64,000 nt of DNA, from positions 62,001-126,000 of the IMG/VR virus record IMGVR_UViG_3300023049_000005; one strand, given 5' to 3'. A program made the translations under genes and the position numbers. Positions 5,259-61,647 of this stretch are shown one piece after another (the stretch's first letter is position 1; every line of letters begins with the position of its first letter). The notes beneath the pieces were generated by a model, which was not told the origin of the DNA, made no database searches, and saw only the letters and a program-made list of their open reading frames with translations.

Positions 5259-5729
5259 ATGAACATTTTAAAGTTTTTCAGGTGGCAAGGATTTAAGAAA
5301 GTTCCTAAGAAATACTTTACACAAGAATCGTTCGCTTATAGTGTTGAACACAGGGAATGTTGGAGTGAATATAACGGACTTCGAGAAGATCTTAGTAAAA
5401 TTTGGTTCGAAATAAAAGAAGTTAGTAAACGTGAAGCAGAAGGATATAGGAGAACAGCAAGACTCTTGTTTGATCCTGTTAGGCACAATTGTCTTAGTTT
5501 ACAACTAAACGAAAAGGAAATAGTATATATATTCTGTAATAATCAAATGTCATATTCTATATTAATGATAAATAACGAAGATGGGATTTTCACAAGGGCG
5601 TATGAATTTATGTTAGAAGATCACGGAACAGAAAACTCATTTAACAAAAATTTAAAATCTGTAATTGGTACAACAAGATACAGAGATTATGTATTAACTC
5701 AAATTTTTAAAAAAGAAGAAAAGGTATGA
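5259..5729 (+). CDS. hypothetical protein, C-terminal motif family
   Basis: RDYVLTQIF near C-terminus. Confidence 0.6.
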   Translation: MNILKFFRWQGFKKVPKKYFTQESFAYSVEHRECWSEYNGLREDLSKIWFEIKEVSKREAEGYRRTARLLFDPVRHNCLSLQLNEKEIVYIFCNNQMSYSILMINNEDGIFTRAYEFMLEDHGTENSFNKNLKSVIGTTRYRDYVLTQIFKKEEKV

Positions 5730-6649
5730 ACACAAAGGTATTTAGTTTAAAGAATTCAAGAGAGATCGGAAAGAAGATCACAAACATCGATTTGATGACA
5801 ACAAAACAATTCTCTGATGGAGAAATAAAAGTCGAAATCGAAGAAAGCGTTAGAAGTAATAGGGTGTTTGTTATTGGGTCACTAACTACCTCTGATGATA
5901 TTATCGAATTAATGATGGTGGGTGATGCTTTAAGAAGGGCAAGCGCAAAAGAAATTATTGCAGTCGTTCCTTACTTAGCCTATATGCGTCAGGATAGAAA
6001 GGATAAACCTAGAACAGCAATCGGTTCTAAAGTGATGGCAAATATGATCGAGATCTATTATGATCAAATCATCACTATGGATTTACACTCAACACAAATC
6101 GAAGGATTCTTTAATATACCTGTTACGCATATTAATTGTGCTACAATATTTGAAATCTATATTAGAAAAAACTTTGACCTTAGTAACGTGATCATTGTTT
6201 CTCCTGATGTTGGGGGGGCAAAAAGAGCAAAGAAGTTGAGTTCAAAAATGGGGCTTCCATTGGCTATTATTAACAAAGAGAGAAAGATAGCTAATGAAAT
6301 ATCTTCTATGGAATTAATAGGTGATGTTAATAGTAAAGATGTGATCATATTAGATGATATGGTTGATACTGCAGGTTCTTTATGTAAAGCAAGCGATTTG
6401 TTAATTGAAAACGGTGCGAATAAGGTTTGGGGTTGTGCAACACATGGTGTTTTATCAGGGGAAGCACATAATAGAATATTAAATTCGAGTTTAGAGAAAT
6501 TAATTTGCACTGATACTATTAAGATAAAAGATAATGAAAAGATAGAGATACTAAGCTGTTCAGACCTAATTAAGAAAACTATTGAAACTATTGAGAGTGG
6601 AAATAGTATAAATAGTTTAGTAAATGATGAAACTTTTCTCGTTAATTAG
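5726..6649 (+). CDS. prs: ribose-phosphate pyrophosphokinase
   Basis: FSDGE, PYLAYMRQDR, DLHS.QI.GFF, VSPDVGG, DDMVDTAGS. Confidence 0.97.
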   Translation: MNTKVFSLKNSREIGKKITNIDLMTTKQFSDGEIKVEIEESVRSNRVFVIGSLTTSDDIIELMMVGDALRRASAKEIIAVVPYLAYMRQDRKDKPRTAIGSKVMANMIEIYYDQIITMDLHSTQIEGFFNIPVTHINCATIFEIYIRKNFDLSNVIIVSPDVGGAKRAKKLSSKMGLPLAIINKERKIANEISSMELIGDVNSKDVIILDDMVDTAGSLCKASDLLIENGANKVWGCATHGVLSGEAHNRILNSSLEKLICTDTIKIKDNEKIEILSCSDLIKKTIETIESGNSINSLVNDETFLVN

Positions 6650-6722: not shown

Positions 6723-7583
6723 ATGAATAAATCCAACGAAAGTTATCTATTTAACATAGAACAAAAAGCAAGAATGTTCAAAGAAAAGACAAAAAAGGAT
6801 TTTTCGGATTTCTACGAAAAATATTTCCCTAAATTAGTTTTCTACAACAACAACATTTTAAAAGACGAAGAAGCAGCAAAAGACATCGCAACAGATGTGA
6901 TGCTTAAATCTCTTTATAAAATCGATGATTATGATCCTAACAAAGCAAGGTTTTCTACATGGTTGTTTACCATCTCAAAAAACGAGTGTTTTCAATACAA
7001 AAAGAATCAAGCTGATAAATTAATATCAGTTGATAAATTTGTTGATGATGATGGAACTACTATTAAAGACTTCTTAAATGATTCATCTCTTGAAGACGAA
7101 GAAATATTCCAATCGAAAGAATTAGACGATAAGAAAGGGATGATTCTAAAGGAAAGAATAAAACAATTAAAAGAACCATATAGAGAAGTTATCTCTTTAA
7201 GAGAGATCGAACTTAGATCTTATAGAGATATTACTATTATCATGAGAGAAGAAAATGAAATCGAAATCGATGATTCTTATTTCATTACTGATCATATATT
7301 ACATATGGTAGACCCTGAGAAGAAAGAAGATAATGAGTTAATCAAATTTCATACTATCGATAGTGTATTGGATAAATACGGAGATCCTGTTGAATTCACT
7401 ATATTAGATATAGATAAAGATGGTCTTATATCTTGTATAAAATTACCTAAGGGGGAATATACTATCATAGGTGAAACTCCATATAACATTAGTACTATAA
7501 AATCTCAAATAAGAAACGGAAGGAAACTTTTACAGAACGCTGTAAAGGAAGAATTTGAAATCTTGGATAAAACATTTCAATAA
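6723..7583 (+). CDS. ECF-type sigma-70 factor with an insertion in region 4
   Basis: region 2 (AKDIATD..L; FSTWLFTISKN) and region 4 (SYRDI...STIKSQIRNGR). Confidence 0.85.
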   Translation: MNKSNESYLFNIEQKARMFKEKTKKDFSDFYEKYFPKLVFYNNNILKDEEAAKDIATDVMLKSLYKIDDYDPNKARFSTWLFTISKNECFQYKKNQADKLISVDKFVDDDGTTIKDFLNDSSLEDEEIFQSKELDDKKGMILKERIKQLKEPYREVISLREIELRSYRDITIIMREENEIEIDDSYFITDHILHMVDPEKKEDNELIKFHTIDSVLDKYGDPVEFTILDIDKDGLISCIKLPKGEYTIIGETPYNISTIKSQIRNGRKLLQNAVKEEFEILDKTFQ

Positions 7584-10730: not shown

Positions 10731-10803
10731 GGTGTTCGTAGCTCAGGGGAAGAGCGTCTGTTTGTGACACAGAAGGTCGGGATCTCGGAATTCCTCGAAC
10801 ACC
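10731..10803 (+). tRNA. tRNA-His(GTG) with atypical T-arm
   Basis: G-1:C73, stem TCTGT/ACAGA, GTG at 10764-66; T-loop CTCGGAA. Confidence 0.75.
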
Positions 10804-10813
10804 CAAAATATAT

Positions 10814-10906
10814 GGTGATTGTAGCTGAATGGTATGTAGTATCTGTAAGAGAACAAGCACTTGGTTGTGACCCAAGAGGATGTCGGTTCGAGTCCGATCT
10901 TTCACC
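10814..10906 (+). tRNA. tRNA-His(GTG) with ~20-nt D-loop insertion
   Basis: G-1:C73, stem CTTGG/CCAAG, GTG at 10867-69, canonical TTCGAGT T-loop. Confidence 0.75.
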
Positions 10907-11236: not shown

Positions 11237-11270
11237 AAGCCCTAATAGAATATCTGTTAGGGCTTTTTTT
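11237..11270 (+). terminator. attenuator terminator upstream of the Lys/Phe tRNA array
   Basis: AAGCCCTAATAGA-ATA-TCTGTTAGGGCTTTTTTT. Confidence 0.85.
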
Positions 11271-11274
11271 ATAT

Positions 11275-11348
11275 CCCCTCTTAACTCAGTTGGCTAGAGT
11301 ACCGTGCTTTTAACACGGGAGTCGCAAGTTCGAGCCTTGTAGGGGGGA
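11275..11348 (+). tRNA. tRNA-Lys(TTT)
   Basis: cloverleaf; CCGTG-CTTTTAA-CACGG. Confidence 0.92.
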
Positions 11349-11356
11349 CAAAATAT

Positions 11357-11444
11357 GCAGGTGTATCCGTAGTTGGTCGAACGGTCCCGCCTTTTAAGCG
11401 GATGAGTGAAAGCTCCAACGTGGGTTCGAATCCCACCACCTGCA
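11357..11444 (+). tRNA. tRNA with Lys(TTT) anticodon and long class-II-type variable arm
   Basis: GCAGGTG/CACCTGC acceptor, CCGC-CTTTTAA-GCGG, extra arm GAGT-GAAA-GCTC, A73. Confidence 0.8.
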
Positions 11445-11449
11445 CAAAC

Positions 11450-11522
11450 GGTGATATAGCTCAGTTGGTAGAGCAGTGGATTGAAGATCCACGTGTCGGG
11501 GGTTCAAGTCCCTCTATCACCA
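11450..11522 (+). tRNA. tRNA-Phe(GAA)
   Basis: cloverleaf; GTGGA-TTGAAGA-TCCAC. Confidence 0.93.
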
Positions 11523-11530
11523 CAACATAT

Positions 11531-11604
11531 TCCCTCGTAGCTCAGTTGGTTAGAGCTACCGACTTTTAATCGGTAAGTCACAGGTTCGAGTCCTGTCGGG
11601 GGAA
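11531..11604 (+). tRNA. tRNA-Lys(TTT)
   Basis: cloverleaf; ACCGA-CTTTTAA-TCGGT. Confidence 0.93.
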
Positions 11605-11609
11605 CATAT

Positions 11610-11681
11610 GGAAACTTAGCTGAGACGGTTTAGCGGAAGGTTGAAGACCTTCAGAGGTGGGTTCGATCCCCACAGTTTCCA
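11610..11681 (+). tRNA. tRNA-Phe(GAA)
   Basis: cloverleaf; GAAGG-TTGAAGA-CCTTC. Confidence 0.9.
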
Positions 11682-11687
11682 CAATAT

Positions 11688-11761
11688 TCCTTCGTAGCTC
11701 AGTTGGCTAGAGTAACTGACTCTTAATCAGTGGGTCACAGGTTCGAGTCCTGTCGGGGGAA
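11688..11761 (+). tRNA. tRNA-Lys(CTT)
   Basis: cloverleaf; ACTGA-CTCTTAA-TCAGT. Confidence 0.93.
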
Positions 11762-11762
11762 C

Positions 11763-11799
11763 TAATCAGAGGTCGTGGGTTCGAATCCCACCGCCTGTA
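11763..11799 (+). pseudogene. 3' half of a tRNA gene
   Basis: TAATCAGA-GGTC-GTGGG-TTCGAAT-CCCAC-CGCCTGT with no 5' half. Confidence 0.7.
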
Positions 11800-11853
11800 T
11801 TTATATTAAAGGTTGAAATAAAAGATTATAACGTAGATGAAAATTAAATAAGA

Positions 11854-12978
11854 TCAAATAATTATTATACCGTCTCTATTAGGCGAAACGCTTAAGATTT
11901 TTATTCTCTGATGGAGATTATCTTGTATATAATTAATATATTGTCTAAAGTTAGGATCTTCTAAATCTGCTTTAACCCATGATTTGAAATCATAATATTT
12001 ACCACCACAATAAATTTTAAGTGGGGTTATATTTTCTAGTACATCAGATTTAGTCATAATTAAATCAGTTACTCCATTTAATTCTATACTCTCTTTTAAT
12101 TCATCTAAGTTTAACCAACCACATCTTCTTGGTCTGCCTGTTGTAGCACCAAACTCCCCACCTGCCTTCTGTATTCTTTCGCCAAGTTGATTTTTTAATT
12201 CAGTTTTCATATCACCATTACCAACTCGTGTTAAATATGATTTAAACACACCATATACTTTACCAACACTCTGAGGTGGCATTGCCAACCCTACACATGC
12301 ACCTGAACTTACTGTATTTGATGAAGTAACATATGGATAAGATCCATGATCAATATCTAACATAGTACCTTGTGCGCCCTCTGCTAGTATTTCACCTTCT
12401 TGGTTTCTTAACCAATTAGACTTAACGATATTTAATGTTTTAAGAAATTCCATACCTACTCTAAAATGTTCGAACTCAAGGAATTCATCTTGGTCTTTAC
12501 CCATTAAATCAACAGGTTCTATATTTAGATCGTTTCCAATAAAATCCACAACTCTATAACCTTCTCGGTATATTTTATCTCGATAACAAGGTCCGATCCC
12601 CTTTGGGGTACTACCTATGGTTGACACATTCTCTTTATCTTCCATAAAATGGAAAGGAGTCACTACGTGTGCGTTTTCTGAAATGAAAATTCTCTCTCTT
12701 GCGTTGGGTATATGTTCTTCAACTTCTTTTATTTCTTGCATCAATTGAAATGGGTCGATAACCATACCATTACCCAAAAAATTCTTTGTGTGTTCATGTA
12801 CTATACCACTTGGTATTAAGTGTAAAACTATTTTTATTCCATTATGATATATCGTATGTCCTGCGTTTGCACCGCCCTGATATCTAGCAACAATATCATA
12901 TTTTTTAGACAACATATCTGTTATCTTTCCTTTTCCTTCGTCTCCAAATTGAAGCCCTACTAATACGTCCATAAACAA
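11854..12978 (-). CDS. purA: adenylosuccinate synthetase
   Basis: GLQFGDEGKGK, GGANAGHT, EGAQG, GATTGRPRRCGW. Confidence 0.97.
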   Translation of the reverse strand: MFMDVLVGLQFGDEGKGKITDMLSKKYDIVARYQGGANAGHTIYHNGIKIVLHLIPSGIVHEHTKNFLGNGMVIDPFQLMQEIKEVEEHIPNARERIFISENAHVVTPFHFMEDKENVSTIGSTPKGIGPCYRDKIYREGYRVVDFIGNDLNIEPVDLMGKDQDEFLEFEHFRVGMEFLKTLNIVKSNWLRNQEGEILAEGAQGTMLDIDHGSYPYVTSSNTVSSGACVGLAMPPQSVGKVYGVFKSYLTRVGNGDMKTELKNQLGERIQKAGGEFGATTGRPRRCGWLNLDELKESIELNGVTDLIMTKSDVLENITPLKIYCGGKYYDFKSWVKADLEDPNFRQYINYIQDNLHQRIKILSVSPNRDGIIII

Positions 12979-14997: not shown

Positions 14998-15621
14998 ATG
15001 ACAATATATGATTTACTAAAAGAATACGGATATGATGCAAATGACTTAAAAGCGAGATTTAAGAATAAGCAAATTGAATTGAATGGCGAAGTAGTGGATA
15101 AAAATGAAAAGATTGGTTTTGTAAAAGAAGTTTTTAGTCAAGGATTTTTTATGGAAAAGCTATATGAATTACCATTTTATCCTGATTTCTCAGATCAATT
15201 AATTTTTATCGGTATTGAAAATTTAATACATGGAGAAAGTAATATCAAAAATGAGATGACTGAATTCTTAAAAGATTATAATATGTTAAAAGTATCTAAA
15301 ACTAAAGCTATTTTCTTTAGTACTTTTGATGAAAAACCTGAAGGTGATACAATAAAAATTCAATTCCATGTTGACACTAAAGGTAAGTATGAGCAAGAGT
15401 ATGAAATACCTGAGGAAAAGGATGAATCAGAAGTTATCGATAAGCTAAAAGCTGATATCGATAAAGTAGAAAAACAATTATCAAACCCAGGTTTTGTTAA
15501 CAACGCACCTAAGTTTAAAGTAGATGCTGCTAAGAACAGATTAGAAACTTTAAAGAAAAAGTTAGCTGATATGGGCGTAAATGAATCTAAAGGTATTAAG
15601 AGATTTAAAGACTTTAACTAA
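14998..15621 (+). CDS. S4-like domain fused to a ValRS C-terminal coiled-coil arm
   Basis: KQLSNPGFVNNAPKFKV matches the ValRS C-terminal arm; N-terminus resembles a TyrRS S4 domain. Confidence 0.65.
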   Translation: MTIYDLLKEYGYDANDLKARFKNKQIELNGEVVDKNEKIGFVKEVFSQGFFMEKLYELPFYPDFSDQLIFIGIENLIHGESNIKNEMTEFLKDYNMLKVSKTKAIFFSTFDEKPEGDTIKIQFHVDTKGKYEQEYEIPEEKDESEVIDKLKADIDKVEKQLSNPGFVNNAPKFKVDAAKNRLETLKKKLADMGVNESKGIKRFKDFN

Positions 15622-39830: not shown

Positions 39831-41453
39831 ATGGAACAAAAGTTACTTGAAATATTTGAAAGTCCTCATAGGATGAGGGAAACGTATGTTAAAAAACATC
39901 ACCCAAGTCTATATGATAGTATTATATCATATGTGGATTTTGACATTTCTTTCAAAGAAAAGCTTTGGTATTACTATAATAAACTAGAAGAAAAAATTAC
40001 ATGTAAGTGTGGTAAGGAAACTACGTTCAATAAGAATTTTAAAGACGGTTATAAAAAATATTGCTCTGCTAAATGCGCACAGACAGCCGAATCTACTAAA
40101 GAAAAAAGAAAGAAAACTACTTTACATAAATATGGTGTTGATAATGTAGCTAAAAGTCAGAAAATTAAAGACAAGACCGAAGAAACCAATATCGAAAGGT
40201 ATGGTCATAGATCTACGTTTCAAAATAAAGAAGTTCAGAGCAAATGGAAGGAAAATATTAAAAACAAATATGGCGTTGATCATATCTTCCAATCAGAGGA
40301 AGTAAAAGGAAAGATACAAGATACTATGAAGGAAAGGTATGGTGGACATTATACCAAAACCGATCATTATACAGATAAGCTTGGTGAAATTGGATTCAAG
40401 GAACTAATAAGGAAAAAGAAGTTAGATAAACACAAAGATTTTTTTAAAACACATGGTTATGAGTTTATAGAAATTAAAGATTATAGGAAATTCACCATAA
40501 AAAAGGATGATGATATATTCGAAATATATTGGGAAACTTTTATAAATAGGCTAGAAAACGGATATGAAATATCTACTAATATAAACCCATTATATTATAC
40601 AGGTCAAAGTGAAAAGGAAAAGGAACTCATATCATGGATTAGGACATTGGGTGTAGAAATCGATGAATCTAATAGAAAAATACTAAATGGTAAAGAAATA
40701 GATATATTTCTACCTGAATATAAATTAGGAATAGAATTCAATGGTTTATATTGGCATAGTGAAATGAATAAAGAAAAGAAACATCATATAAACAAAACAA
40801 AACAGTTAAATGAATTAGGAATTAGTTTGGTACACGTATGGGAGGATGATTGGGATCATAAAAAAAATATAATACAATCTATTATTCTTAATAAGTTAAA
40901 TAAAATATCTAATAAGATATATGCTAGAAAGTGTATTATAAAAGAAGTAAATAGTAAGGAAACTAATTCCTTTTTAGATAAAAACCATATACAAGGTAAG
41001 TCAAAGGCTAATATTAAATTAGGTCTATATTATAGAGATGAATTAGTTAGCCTAATGACGTTTGGTTATCGTAATATAAACGGAACTAAGCAATATGAAC
41101 TGATTAGGTTTTGTAATAAAATAAATAATATTGTCGTTGGGTCAGCTTCTAAATTATTTAAATATTTTATTAATAATTATAATTATGATAACATCTTATC
41201 ATACTCTGATATAAGTATGTTTGATGGCAAATTATATGAAATGTTAGGATTCGAAAACATGGGGGAAACTTCTCTAAACTATTGGTGGGTTGTTGATAAA
41301 AAGAGGTATCATCGGTTTACATATAATAAGAAAAAGTTGATCAAAGAAGGACATGACCCAAACTTGACAGAAAAGGAAATTATGTATTCTCTAGGTAATT
41401 ATAGAATTTGGGGATGTGGTCAAATTAGGTGGGTATATAAAAAACGATATTAA
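39831..41453 (+). mobile_element. free-standing Hef-like homing endonuclease gene
   Basis: Zn-ribbon, KYGV repeats, EIDIFLP...IEFNGLYWH..HVWEDDW nuclease, C-terminal GNAT-like fold. Confidence 0.75.
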
Positions 41454-43533: not shown

Positions 43534-43540
43534 AATGGAG

Positions 43541-43913
43541 TGGAGATGGAGGGAGTCGAACCCTCGTCACAGACACTTTAGTATAATACTTTCTACAAGT
43601 TTAGTTTACATAGTTAGGGTAAACACCTTAGTTAAACTTATTTTTTTAAACTGTTCTAATCAAACCAAAATTCAGTCCTTCTTATAATAACTGCTAAGAA
43701 GTTTGCAGCTTGGAGTTTTGTCGGTTGCTTAGACAGCTAATACAAGTTCTCCGTCTTGTACAGATTCCGTAGAATCTAATGCGTCTAAAACGTCAATCTT
43801 TTCAGATACTACGTTTAATTGTTTATCTACTAATTTATTAATCGGACACTTTAATAGACAATCCGATACTTGCTTACACTATCTGAAAATGACGCTCTAA
43901 TCCAGTCACCCCC
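43541..43913 (-). ncRNA. ssrA: tmRNA
   Basis: 5' GGGGGTGACTGGATT; 3' GACGAGGGTTCGACTCCCTCCATCTCCA; G3.U70 pair; internal tag frame 43812-43729. Confidence 0.9.
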
Positions 43914-59922: not shown

Positions 59923-61647
59923 ATGCTATCAAAGGAATTCATAAAAGAGTTCAATTTCAATAATAAGTCAGGTAAGATGTCTAGTTCTAAATATGTATCA
60001 AAGAACTATGCTGCGGATTATGATATTATTATAGGTAATATTAAAGAAGATATCTCATTTAAAGAGAAAGTATATCTAACTGTTAATGATATTAACCATT
60101 CTCCTAATTGTAAGAATCCTAATTGTAATGACAAGGTAAAATTCAGAAATACTACTTTAGGGTATAGAGAGTATTGTTCTAATAAATGTATTGGTTCAGA
60201 TCCTAATATGATCAAAAGAAAAGAACAAAAGTCTTTAGAAAAGTTTGGCACAAAAACACCTGCCGAATCAGAAGTAATCAAACAAAAAATGATCAATACT
60301 AATAATAAATTATATGGTGGTAATTCTCCTATGTCAAATAAAGAAATTCAAGAGAAATCTAAGAAAACTTTAATGGGTAATTGGGGTGTAGAAAACCCTA
60401 ACAGACATAAAGATTTAACAGAAAAAAGAATTAAGAGTTTTAAAAAAAATATAGATCAGTTTAAGGCTTCTTTCAAAGAAACTAGCTTAAAGAAATATGG
60501 TGTGGAACACCATTGGATGGTTAAAGAAATACACGATAAAGGAATTAAAACTACTAATAAGAAAAAACTTCAAAAGGAAGAAACTAAAATTAAAAAGAGG
60601 ATACCAAGTGATTATAAATTACTTGGAATATTCAAAGAAAGTGAATTACATAACAGAACAAGTAGTAGGATGTTATGTAATAAGGGTCATGAATTTGTCA
60701 TAAATAATGATCTTTTATATCATAGGACAGTTAAAAACGATACAGTGATATGTACTGAATGTCATCCTCAAAATAATAGAAGTGTAAGTGGATTAGAATT
60801 ACAACTACTTAATTTCATCGAAGAAAGTTATGAAGGTGAAATCATAACTAATAATAGAACTATTATACCGCCACACGAAGTAGATATTTATCTACCTGAA
60901 ATCAAATTAGCTATTGAATTTAATGGTCTTTTTTGGCATAGTGAGATCAATAAGGACAAGTATTATCACTTCAATAAAACTAATGAAGCTGAGAAAGAAG
61001 GCATACAGATGTTACATATTTGGGAAGACGATTGGCTATTGAAGGATGATATAGTTAAATCTATGTTAAAGAATAAATTCAATAATACTCCTAATAAAGT
61101 ATTTGGTAGAAAATGTAAAATTAAAAAAGTTGGCTCTAAGGAATACAGAGAATTCTTAGATAATAATCATATACAAGGTTATTCTAATTCTACTTACTCG
61201 TATGGTTTGTATTATAACGAAAAATTAGTTAGTCTAATGACCTTTTCTAAACCAAGGAATATGATGGGACATAAAAGTAGAGATAATGTTTATGAGTTAG
61301 CTAGGTTTTGTAATAAGACTAATTACAATATAGTAGGTGGTGCTTCTAAATTATTTAAACACTTTATAAAAGAACATTCTCCTAAAGAAATATATTCTTT
61401 TAGTGATAGGTCATATTCTAATGGTAATCTTTATAAGATATTAGGGTTTGAATATAGTCACAGAAGTAAAATAAATTACCATTGGGTATTAAACAAAGAG
61501 AGAAAGCATAGATATAATTTTGCTAAACATAAACTAGTAGAAAAGGGATACGATCCCAATTTATCAGAAAGGGAAATTATGTATGAACAAGTGGGTGCTT
61601 ATAGAATATGGAATAGTGGTCAAGATAAGTGGGTTTATCACATATAG
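59923..61647 (+). mobile_element. free-standing Hef-like homing endonuclease gene (paralog of 39831..41453)
   Basis: same architecture: YCS.KC, KYGV repeats, EVDIYLP..IEFNGLFWH..HIWEDDW, GNAT-like C-terminus. Confidence 0.75.

Follow-up and report, generated by a model that had tools for sequence, protein, structure and literature searches.

Here, we show that a jumbo phage from lake water carries a tRNA gene with a lysine UUU anticodon and an A73 discriminator on the long-armed class II body normally reserved for serine, tyrosine and leucine tRNAs, and that it belongs to a widespread and apparently undescribed family of such re-bodied tRNAs in phages, which are probably kept as structurally different spares. 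The gene was found in a 64,000-nt stretch of DNA (hereafter the window; bases 62001-126000 of the 270,756-bp virus record IMGVR_UViG_3300023049_000005), at positions 11357-11444 on the plus strand. The original prediction, made from the sequence alone, described an 88-nt tRNA with a long paired variable arm, A73, a body typical of Leu/Ser/Tyr tRNAs and an anticodon stem centred on CTTTTAA, and every one of these observations was confirmed. Its interpretation, that either LysRS charges a scaffold which tRNA-Lys nucleases may not recognise or LeuRS charges it and inserts Leu at AAA as an emergency bypass, was only partly supported, as lysine identity is favoured on indirect grounds, nuclease evasion is an inference, and the LeuRS reading is disfavoured.

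ARAGORN called window positions 11357-11445 as tRNA-Lys(ttt), 89 nt including one base past the discriminator, and the Rfam tRNA model RF00005 matched 11357-11444 end to end at 51.9 bits against a gathering score of 29, in the same anticodon register and with 14 nt treated as an insertion in the variable region. A different anticodon register had been named beforehand as an outcome that would overturn the prediction, but neither program offered one. The tRNA contains a 7-bp acceptor stem (11357-11363/11437-11443), three linker bases (UAU, 11364-11366) rather than two, a D-arm (11367-11384) with a 4-bp stem and a canonical loop (AGUUGGUCGA; A14, G15, G18G19 and A21), and an anticodon stem CCCGC/GCGGA (11386-11390/11398-11402) in which four Watson-Crick pairs (CCGC/GCGG, as originally predicted) follow a C27.A43 mismatch. 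The anticodon loop CUUUUAA (11391-11397) presents UUU at 11393-11395, and a single U precedes the variable arm GAGU-GAAA-GCUC (11404-11415), a 4-bp stem with a GAAA loop that is followed by the 3′ linker CAAC (11416-11419), a canonical T-arm (11420-11436) and A73 at 11444, with no encoded CCA. An unconstrained minimum free energy fold kept the acceptor, variable and T helices (z = -2.9).

The long tRNA lies in a tight cluster of six tRNAs at 11275-11762, all on the plus strand, just downstream of a terminator-like hairpin (11237-11265). An ordinary class I tRNA-Lys(UUU) (11275-11348) ends 8 nt upstream of the long tRNA, and the cluster continues with the first of two divergent tRNA-Phe(GAA) copies (11450-11522), a second class I tRNA-Lys(UUU) with a different anticodon stem (11531-11604), the second tRNA-Phe (11610-11681) and a class I tRNA-Lys(CUU) (11688-11761). 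Positions 11762-11800 hold the remnant 3′ half of a class I tRNA, comprising the 3′ strand of the anticodon stem, a 5-nt variable loop, a T-arm, the 3′ strand of the acceptor stem and A73, whose T-arm and acceptor match the long tRNA-Lys at 23 of 24 bases in a short-query blastn comparison with the phage's tRNAs. This remnant is also present in a near-identical contig, L003.

The virus record has 29.8% G+C and is estimated to be 89% complete, and the DNA sequencing runs containing it are lake-water metagenomes. A near-identity search of the phage collection found no match. The window encodes a portal, prohead protease, major capsid protein, large terminase and tail sheath, and the capsid protein is 48-58% identical to those of the 634-735-kb uncultured huge phages LR745206 and LR756501-4 and more distantly related to those of Lak and Tenacibaculum phages. 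Given that Bacteroidetes hosts were predicted for the genomes above 634 kb (PMC7162821), a Bacteroidota host is likely here, although this is an inference.

Across the whole record, ARAGORN found 19 tRNAs and a tmRNA, to which Rfam added two tRNA-His-like genes in the window and one more tRNA in the second cluster. Five tRNAs are 85-89 nt long but carry class I anticodons, namely Lys(UUU) with A73, Asn(GUU) with G73, Thr(UGU) with U73, Val(UAC) with A73 and Cys(GCA) with U73, and all five pass the Rfam threshold. Each carries the canonical N73 for its anticodon, and for Lys, Asn, Thr and Val this is also the N73 of an ordinary 75-nt class I tRNA of the same anticodon in the genome, whereas Cys has no such counterpart. 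The long Lys and long Asn share one body, with the same D-arm, the same arm architecture and the same CA-N-C linker, and differ at N34, N73 and the acceptor stem. By contrast, the three genuine Leu tRNAs of the phage have a 3-bp D-stem (GUG/CAC) with A15 and U48, whereas the long tRNA-Lys has a 4-bp D-stem with G15 and C48, and so lacks the Leu-type core despite its A73.

To determine how widespread this body is, we searched for the 18-nt D-arm of the long Lys, which occurs in 9 IMG/VR contigs, each time within an 87-89-nt tRNA that is either Asn(GUU) or Lys(UUU). Running ARAGORN over all loci, including those from a slightly relaxed pattern, gave at least 42 tRNAs on this body, at least 32 of them distinct, from viral and metagenome contigs. 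Without exception among the 32, GUU goes with G73 and the linker UUG, UUU/CUU with A73, and UGU/CGU with U73. In the alignment of the 32, the cloverleaf with the extra arm has 98% of cells paired and a covariation score of 0.622 against 0.156 in shuffles, a value reached by none of 500 shuffles, and all four variable-arm pairs show changes on both sides with 97.5% of cells paired, as compared with 29-46% in slid controls, indicating that the arm is not a chance hairpin and that the structure is under selection. As the set was collected by the exact D-arm motif, D-arm invariance is by construction and the isotype counts are biased, and because related sequences share ancestry, the coupling between N73 and anticodon does not represent 32 independent events. 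RefSeq annotates one homologue, in Cellulophaga phage phi4:1, as 'tRNA-OTHER / tRNA-Pseudo', and a truncated tRNA remnant lies in the cluster studied here, but compensatory changes in all variable helices across distant phages and environments, together with the Rfam score well above threshold, contradict the reading of a decaying duplicate, which we consider very improbable.

A covariance model built from this alignment scored the long tRNA-Lys of the window at 102 bits and members not used to build it at 80-102 bits, while the long Cys and Thr forms of the phage scored 61-66 bits, true Leu/Ser/Tyr tRNAs of phages 31-47 bits (47 or less for the Leu tRNAs of this phage) and class I tRNAs at most 49 bits. 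All four published huge phages searched hold strong matches, and their long tRNAs include Asn, Thr, Val, Glu, Gln and Arg as well as Lys, with three different long Lys scaffolds in tandem. Three cultured phages also carry members: Cellulophaga phage phi4:1 has a long Asn, the only Asn tRNA in the tRNA stretch retrieved; Rhizobium phage RHph_I1_18 has a long Lys(UUU), annotated as tRNA-Lys; and Xanthomonas phage X1 has a long Lys(CUU) and a long Asn, each beside a class I twin. Other long-armed tRNAs on different scaffolds, for His, Trp, Cys, Met, Glu, Asp, Ile and further Lys, appeared as bystanders in the retrieved loci.

The family is essentially phage-only. In one genome for each of 185,579 species, the D-arm 18-mer lies in a tRNA only once, in a 2.9-kb contig of an Ignavibacteriaceae MAG where a long Lys(CUU) sits between two class I Lys tRNAs, and the other 11 hits are not tRNAs and are regarded as chance matches, about 17 of which are expected for an 18-mer in that much sequence. 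In 151 genomes of that phylum, no match apart from that contig reached family level, and the best matches, at 54-64 bits, were the hosts' own tRNAs; the nine examined, all among the highest-scoring, were tRNA-Tyr(GUA), with scores of 58-64 bits. Against the full tRNA set of one such genome, the body of the long Lys and Asn most resembled Ser and Tyr (66-73% identity) rather than class I Lys or Asn, the D-arm was almost the host Ser/Tyr D-arm, and the arm geometry was Tyr-like, with a short stem, one unpaired base on the 5′ side and three or four on the 3′ side. The original assignment to a Leu/Ser/Tyr-type body was thus right and can be narrowed to Ser/Tyr. Mimicry of a host tRNA-Lys was rejected, as the host-phylum Lys tRNAs are class I.

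We next asked which amino acid the tRNA is likely to carry. The E. coli tRNA-Lys identity elements, U35 and U36 with U or C at position 34 and A73, are all present. If the chassis dictated identity, N73 would be constant, as in nematode nev-tRNAs, in which A73 is invariant in all 115 genes whatever the anticodon and which are leucylated (PMC3333845). By contrast, across all long tRNAs seen, N73 largely equals that of class I tRNAs of the same isotype: A in 19/19 Lys, G in 16/17 Asn, U in 4/4 Cys, C in 4/4 His, U in 4/4 Thr and G in 3/4 Trp. Many Asn members keep the U1-A72 pair typical of bacterial tRNA-Asn, and an Asn member (locus L126) and two Lys members (L118) share an identical 17-nt variable region, indicating that isotype switches have happened on the same chassis and that switching between these two class IIb identities needed only N34, N73 and the acceptor stem. 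In several phage contigs, the long Asn is the only Asn tRNA found in the stretch examined, among 8-17 tRNAs there. In the huge phage LR756504, a 378-aa LysRS-type gene lies 19 nt from a Lys(CUU)/long Lys(UUU)/Lys(UUU) triplet and is followed by another Lys(CUU), its product matching the lysine-tRNA ligase model NF001756 at 359 bits (E = 3.8e-107) and PF00152 at 240 bits. In addition, AAA makes up 6.0% of the codons of the phage, so systematic misreading would be costly. These points argue for lysine charging and, together with the differences from the phage's Leu tRNAs in D-stem, positions 15 and 48 and family-model score, make a LeuRS-charged bypass adaptor very unlikely, although the long arm and A73 are compatible with it and nev-tRNAs show that such tRNAs exist.

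Because the body is nearer to Ser/Tyr than to Leu, the relevant mischarging risk, if there is one, comes from TyrRS or SerRS. The tRNA retains A73 and U35, two bacterial TyrRS elements, with a Tyr-like arm and D-arm but without G34 and A36, and an ochre-suppressor tRNA-Tyr (UUA) stays tyrosine-accepting, so that some Tyr or Ser charging at Lys codons cannot be excluded from sequence. However, N73 follows the amino acid of the anticodon rather than one chassis identity, the G73 of Asn members differs from the A73 of every tRNA-Tyr seen here, and the family arm, with its 3-6-bp stem and four unpaired 3′ bases (CA-N-C), is unlike the arms of the host-phylum Ser tRNAs examined, all of which have G73 and longer arm stems, features not shared by this tRNA with its A73 and 4-bp arm. 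An extra base between positions 9 and 10 and a C27.A43 mismatch that recurs in Lys members could act as anti-determinants, which is an inference. Taking these observations together, we regard dual or wrong identity as unlikely.

A further possibility is that the arm marks the tRNA for a phage-encoded LysRS, forming a private tRNA/synthetase pair, as suggested by the LysRS-type gene within the Lys cluster of LR756504, by class IIb synthetase genes near long Lys/Asn tRNAs in LR745206 and LR756502, and by the proposal that phage synthetases charge phage tRNA variants (PMC7162821). However, searches of the 270 kb of this phage found no class IIb or IIa synthetase (no LysRS/AsnRS or ThrRS-type enzyme), RNA ligase or Thg1, although one could be missing from a record estimated to be 89% complete, and neither the loop nor the stem sequence of the variable arm is conserved, a poor fit for a sequence-specific handle. 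This reading is likewise considered improbable. The genome does encode a CCA-adding-type nucleotidyltransferase, which fits its CCA-less tRNA genes, and a fold search of a 207-aa neighbour protein gave only weak matches. RNA sequencing runs sharing words with the cluster shared only 4% of them, and four such runs yielded generic tRNA fragments from other organisms with zero depth over 11355-11405, which is evidence neither for nor against expression.

Why phages graft Lys, Asn or Thr identity onto this body is a matter of hypothesis, with escape from tRNA-targeting defence nucleases the leading guess. The tRNA set of the phage does not follow codon demand, as the two commonest codons, GAT and GAA, have no phage tRNA while Cys (0.7% of codons) and His (1.4%) do, and isoacceptors come in structurally divergent duplicates, with three UUU Lys tRNAs of different anticodon stems and bodies, two Phe, two His and two Met. 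Lysine tRNA is a well-known target of defence nucleases. The PARIS nuclease AriB cleaves E. coli tRNA-Lys(UUU), Thr(UGU) and Asn(GUU), the anticodons of three of the five long tRNAs here, depends on positions 39-41 and on D-loop U16/U17, and is defeated by the variant tRNAs of phage T5 (bioRxiv 10.1101/2025.02.04.636281); the long Lys has G39-C40-G41 where the E. coli target has U39-C40-A41. A whole-body swap would change every surface outside the anticodon loop while keeping what LysRS, EF-Tu and the ribosome need. On the other hand, the anticodon loop is fully canonical, so that a loop-reading nuclease of the PrrC kind would not obviously be evaded, the AriB parallel comes from E. coli with no defence system known from the host of this phage, and long arms also occur on isotypes with no known nuclease. 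A private pairing with phage synthetases and better folding with fewer modifications are other possible reasons for the class II body. A non-translating decoy or sponge that occupies a host tRNA-targeting enzyme would fit the unusual body and the redundancy with three ordinary Lys tRNAs, but is unlikely, given that the tRNA keeps every feature needed for translation (a 7/5 acceptor/T stack, a canonical T-loop, G18G19, U33, A37 and an isotype-matched N73) and that in other phage stretches the long Asn is the only Asn tRNA found.

We therefore propose, with moderate confidence, that this is a functional phage tRNA-Lys(UUU) that reads AAA (and AAG) as lysine and is built on a class II chassis of the bacterial Ser/Tyr type, within a phage-borne family in which the identity elements of a class I amino acid (the anticodon, N73 and acceptor-stem pairs) have been grafted onto one conserved long-armed body, with sister tRNAs for Asn and Thr and looser versions for Cys, Val, Ile, His, Trp and others. 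In this view, the host LysRS would charge it through U35/U36 and A73, the phage's own CCA-adding-type enzyme could mature its 3′ end, and the several structurally unlike lysine adaptors would serve as insurance, as a host or rival-element enzyme that disables tRNA-Lys by recognising the class I body would miss the long-armed copy. The gene, its fold, its conservation, the family and the coupling of N73 to the anticodon are established by our analysis, whereas expression, processing and charging by LysRS are inferred and the protective role is a hypothesis. More speculatively, and doubtful on present evidence, phages of many lineages may systematically rebuild class I isoacceptors (Lys, Asn, Thr, Cys, Val, Ile, His, Trp and others) on this chassis while keeping cognate identity, as a general, previously unrecognised counter-defence that makes phage translation immune to enzymes recognising the class I body, assisted in some phages by compact phage synthetases or the small ValRS-arm-domain protein encoded 3.5 kb away.

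Textbook tRNA biology restricts the long variable arm to Leu, Ser, bacterial Tyr and Sec, whereas here it appears, under clear selection, on tRNAs with anticodons for lysine, asparagine, threonine and at least eight further amino acids beyond Leu, Ser and Tyr. If these tRNAs are charged cognately, many synthetases of both classes tolerate a class II body, which bears on tRNA identity rules and offers natural chassis for engineered or orthogonal tRNAs. If their purpose is escape from tRNA-targeting immunity, they represent a new, whole-body strategy in the phage-host arms race, which is directly testable because cultured phage-host pairs carry family members. Annotation pipelines currently mislabel some of these genes as pseudo-tRNAs. 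Full-text literature searches, which did not cover subscription journals, and targeted reading of the huge-phage paper, the allo-tRNA paper and a 2020 review of non-canonical tRNAs found no description of phage class II-shaped Lys/Asn tRNAs.

Among known systems, nematode nev-tRNAs and eukaryotic nov-tRNAs (PMC3333845) likewise combine a class II shape with anticodons of class I amino acids such as Gly and Ile, but nev-tRNAs keep the Leu discriminator A73 and are leucylated, whereas here N73 and acceptor features switch with the anticodon, pointing to cognate charging, the carriers are phages rather than animals, and the chassis is Ser/Tyr-like rather than Leu-like. The allo-tRNAs and selC*-type tRNAs (Mukai et al. 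2016, PMC5389517) are also metagenome-discovered tRNAs with long variable arms and non-Ser anticodons, some of them phage-borne, but allo-tRNAs are defined by 8/4 or 9/3 acceptor/T stacking and Ser identity (G73/U73), which excludes the present tRNA with its canonical 7/5 stack and isotype-matched N73. The tRNA-Lys/Thr/Asn variants of phage T5 that defeat PARIS AriB (PMC11464382; bioRxiv 10.1101/2025.02.04.636281) and phage tRNAs with anticodon-loop changes (PMC10264068) are spare tRNAs for the same three anticodons (UUU, UGU and GUU) that differ from the host version at sites a defence nuclease reads; however, the T5 variants are ordinary class I tRNAs with point differences (positions 16, 39 and 41), whereas here the whole body is exchanged, and escape from any nuclease is by analogy only. 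Bacterial tRNA-Tyr(GUA) and tRNA-Ser share a near-identical D-arm, a similar T-arm and, for Tyr, the arm geometry, but differ in the anticodon, the acceptor stem and, in Asn/Thr members, N73, and lack the extra base between positions 9 and 10 and the conserved CA-N-C 3′ linker. Finally, in Streptomyces coelicolor, type I and type II tRNA-Leu are served by one LeuRS (PMC6614811), so that one isotype exists in both short-loop and long-arm forms, but there a class II isotype has gained class I members, whereas here class I isotypes have gained class II members, and on a mobile phage genome.

Two tRNA-His(GUG)-like genes at window 10732-10803 (+) and 10815-10906 (+) were found by Rfam but not by ARAGORN, and both contained an encoded G-1 and C73. 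The second carried a 21-nt insertion in the D-loop and two U.U mismatches in the acceptor stem, while the first had an unusual T-loop (CUCGGAA), representing another case of paired canonical and aberrant isoacceptors. In addition, a truncated 3′ half of a class-I tRNA lay directly after tRNA-Lys(CUU) at window 11762-11800 (+), with a T-arm and acceptor 3′ strand 23/24 identical to those of the long tRNA-Lys, suggesting recombination among the clustered tRNAs, and possibly also that the 3′ part of the long form shares ancestry with a class-I gene. The tRNA cluster was flanked by auxiliary metabolic and transcription genes at window 5726-6649 (+), 6723-7583 (+) and 11854-12978 (−), namely those for PRPP synthetase, a sigma-70 region-2 protein and adenylosuccinate synthetase, and elsewhere the genome encoded a CCA-adding-type nucleotidyltransferase (genome 251048-251434 (+)).

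The second tRNA cluster of this genome (genome 162434-163551, within locus L001) held the long Asn, Thr, Val and Cys tRNAs, located at L001 7435-7521, 7785-7869, 8141-8224 and 8466-8551 and interleaved with class-I twins and three Leu tRNAs. The phage also encoded a tmRNA at window 43538-43913 (−), which scored 59.3 bits in Rfam against a gathering score of 47, and for which ARAGORN predicted an atypical 27-residue tag ending in LAV. Two large paralogous HNH/homing-endonuclease-like ORFs (phrog_3339) were located at window 39831-41453 (+) and 59923-61647 (+), one just after the major capsid gene and the other just after the tail sheath gene.

In Cellulophaga phage phi4:1, the long tRNA-Asn (NC_021788.1 90397-90484; 2491-2578 of the retrieved locus L179) is labelled by RefSeq as 'tRNA-OTHER / tRNA-Pseudo'. 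It scored 102 bits on the family model and was the only Asn tRNA found in the 5-kb stretch of the phage's tRNA block that we examined. The label is probably an annotation error that also affects other phages.

In the published huge phage LR756504, a compact 378-aa LysRS-type synthetase was encoded at 398748-399884 (269-1405 (−) of the retrieved locus L149), embedded among four Lys tRNAs, one of which was long-armed, with an HNH endonuclease-like ORF next to the cluster. This LysRS-type synthetase matched the bacterial model in two stretches and lacked about 58 of its N-terminal residues.

A 207-aa protein was encoded at window 14998-15621 (+), 3.5 kb from the tRNA cluster, and its C-terminus matched the ValRS C-terminal tRNA-binding coiled-coil arm (PF10458, 33.5 bits against a cutoff of 25.9), including the LSNPGF..NAP motif, as did all 15 homologues found. 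In two relatives it sits among genes for RNA ligase, Thg1, a truncated class-I synthetase and a class-IIb synthetase-like gene. We predicted its structure with AF2 (pLDDT 86.8), and a Foldseek comparison revealed only weak hits. These were to ValRS (1gax) for the C-terminus and to the S4-like motif of ribosomal eS4 for the N-terminus, and the protein may be a free-standing tRNA-binding factor.
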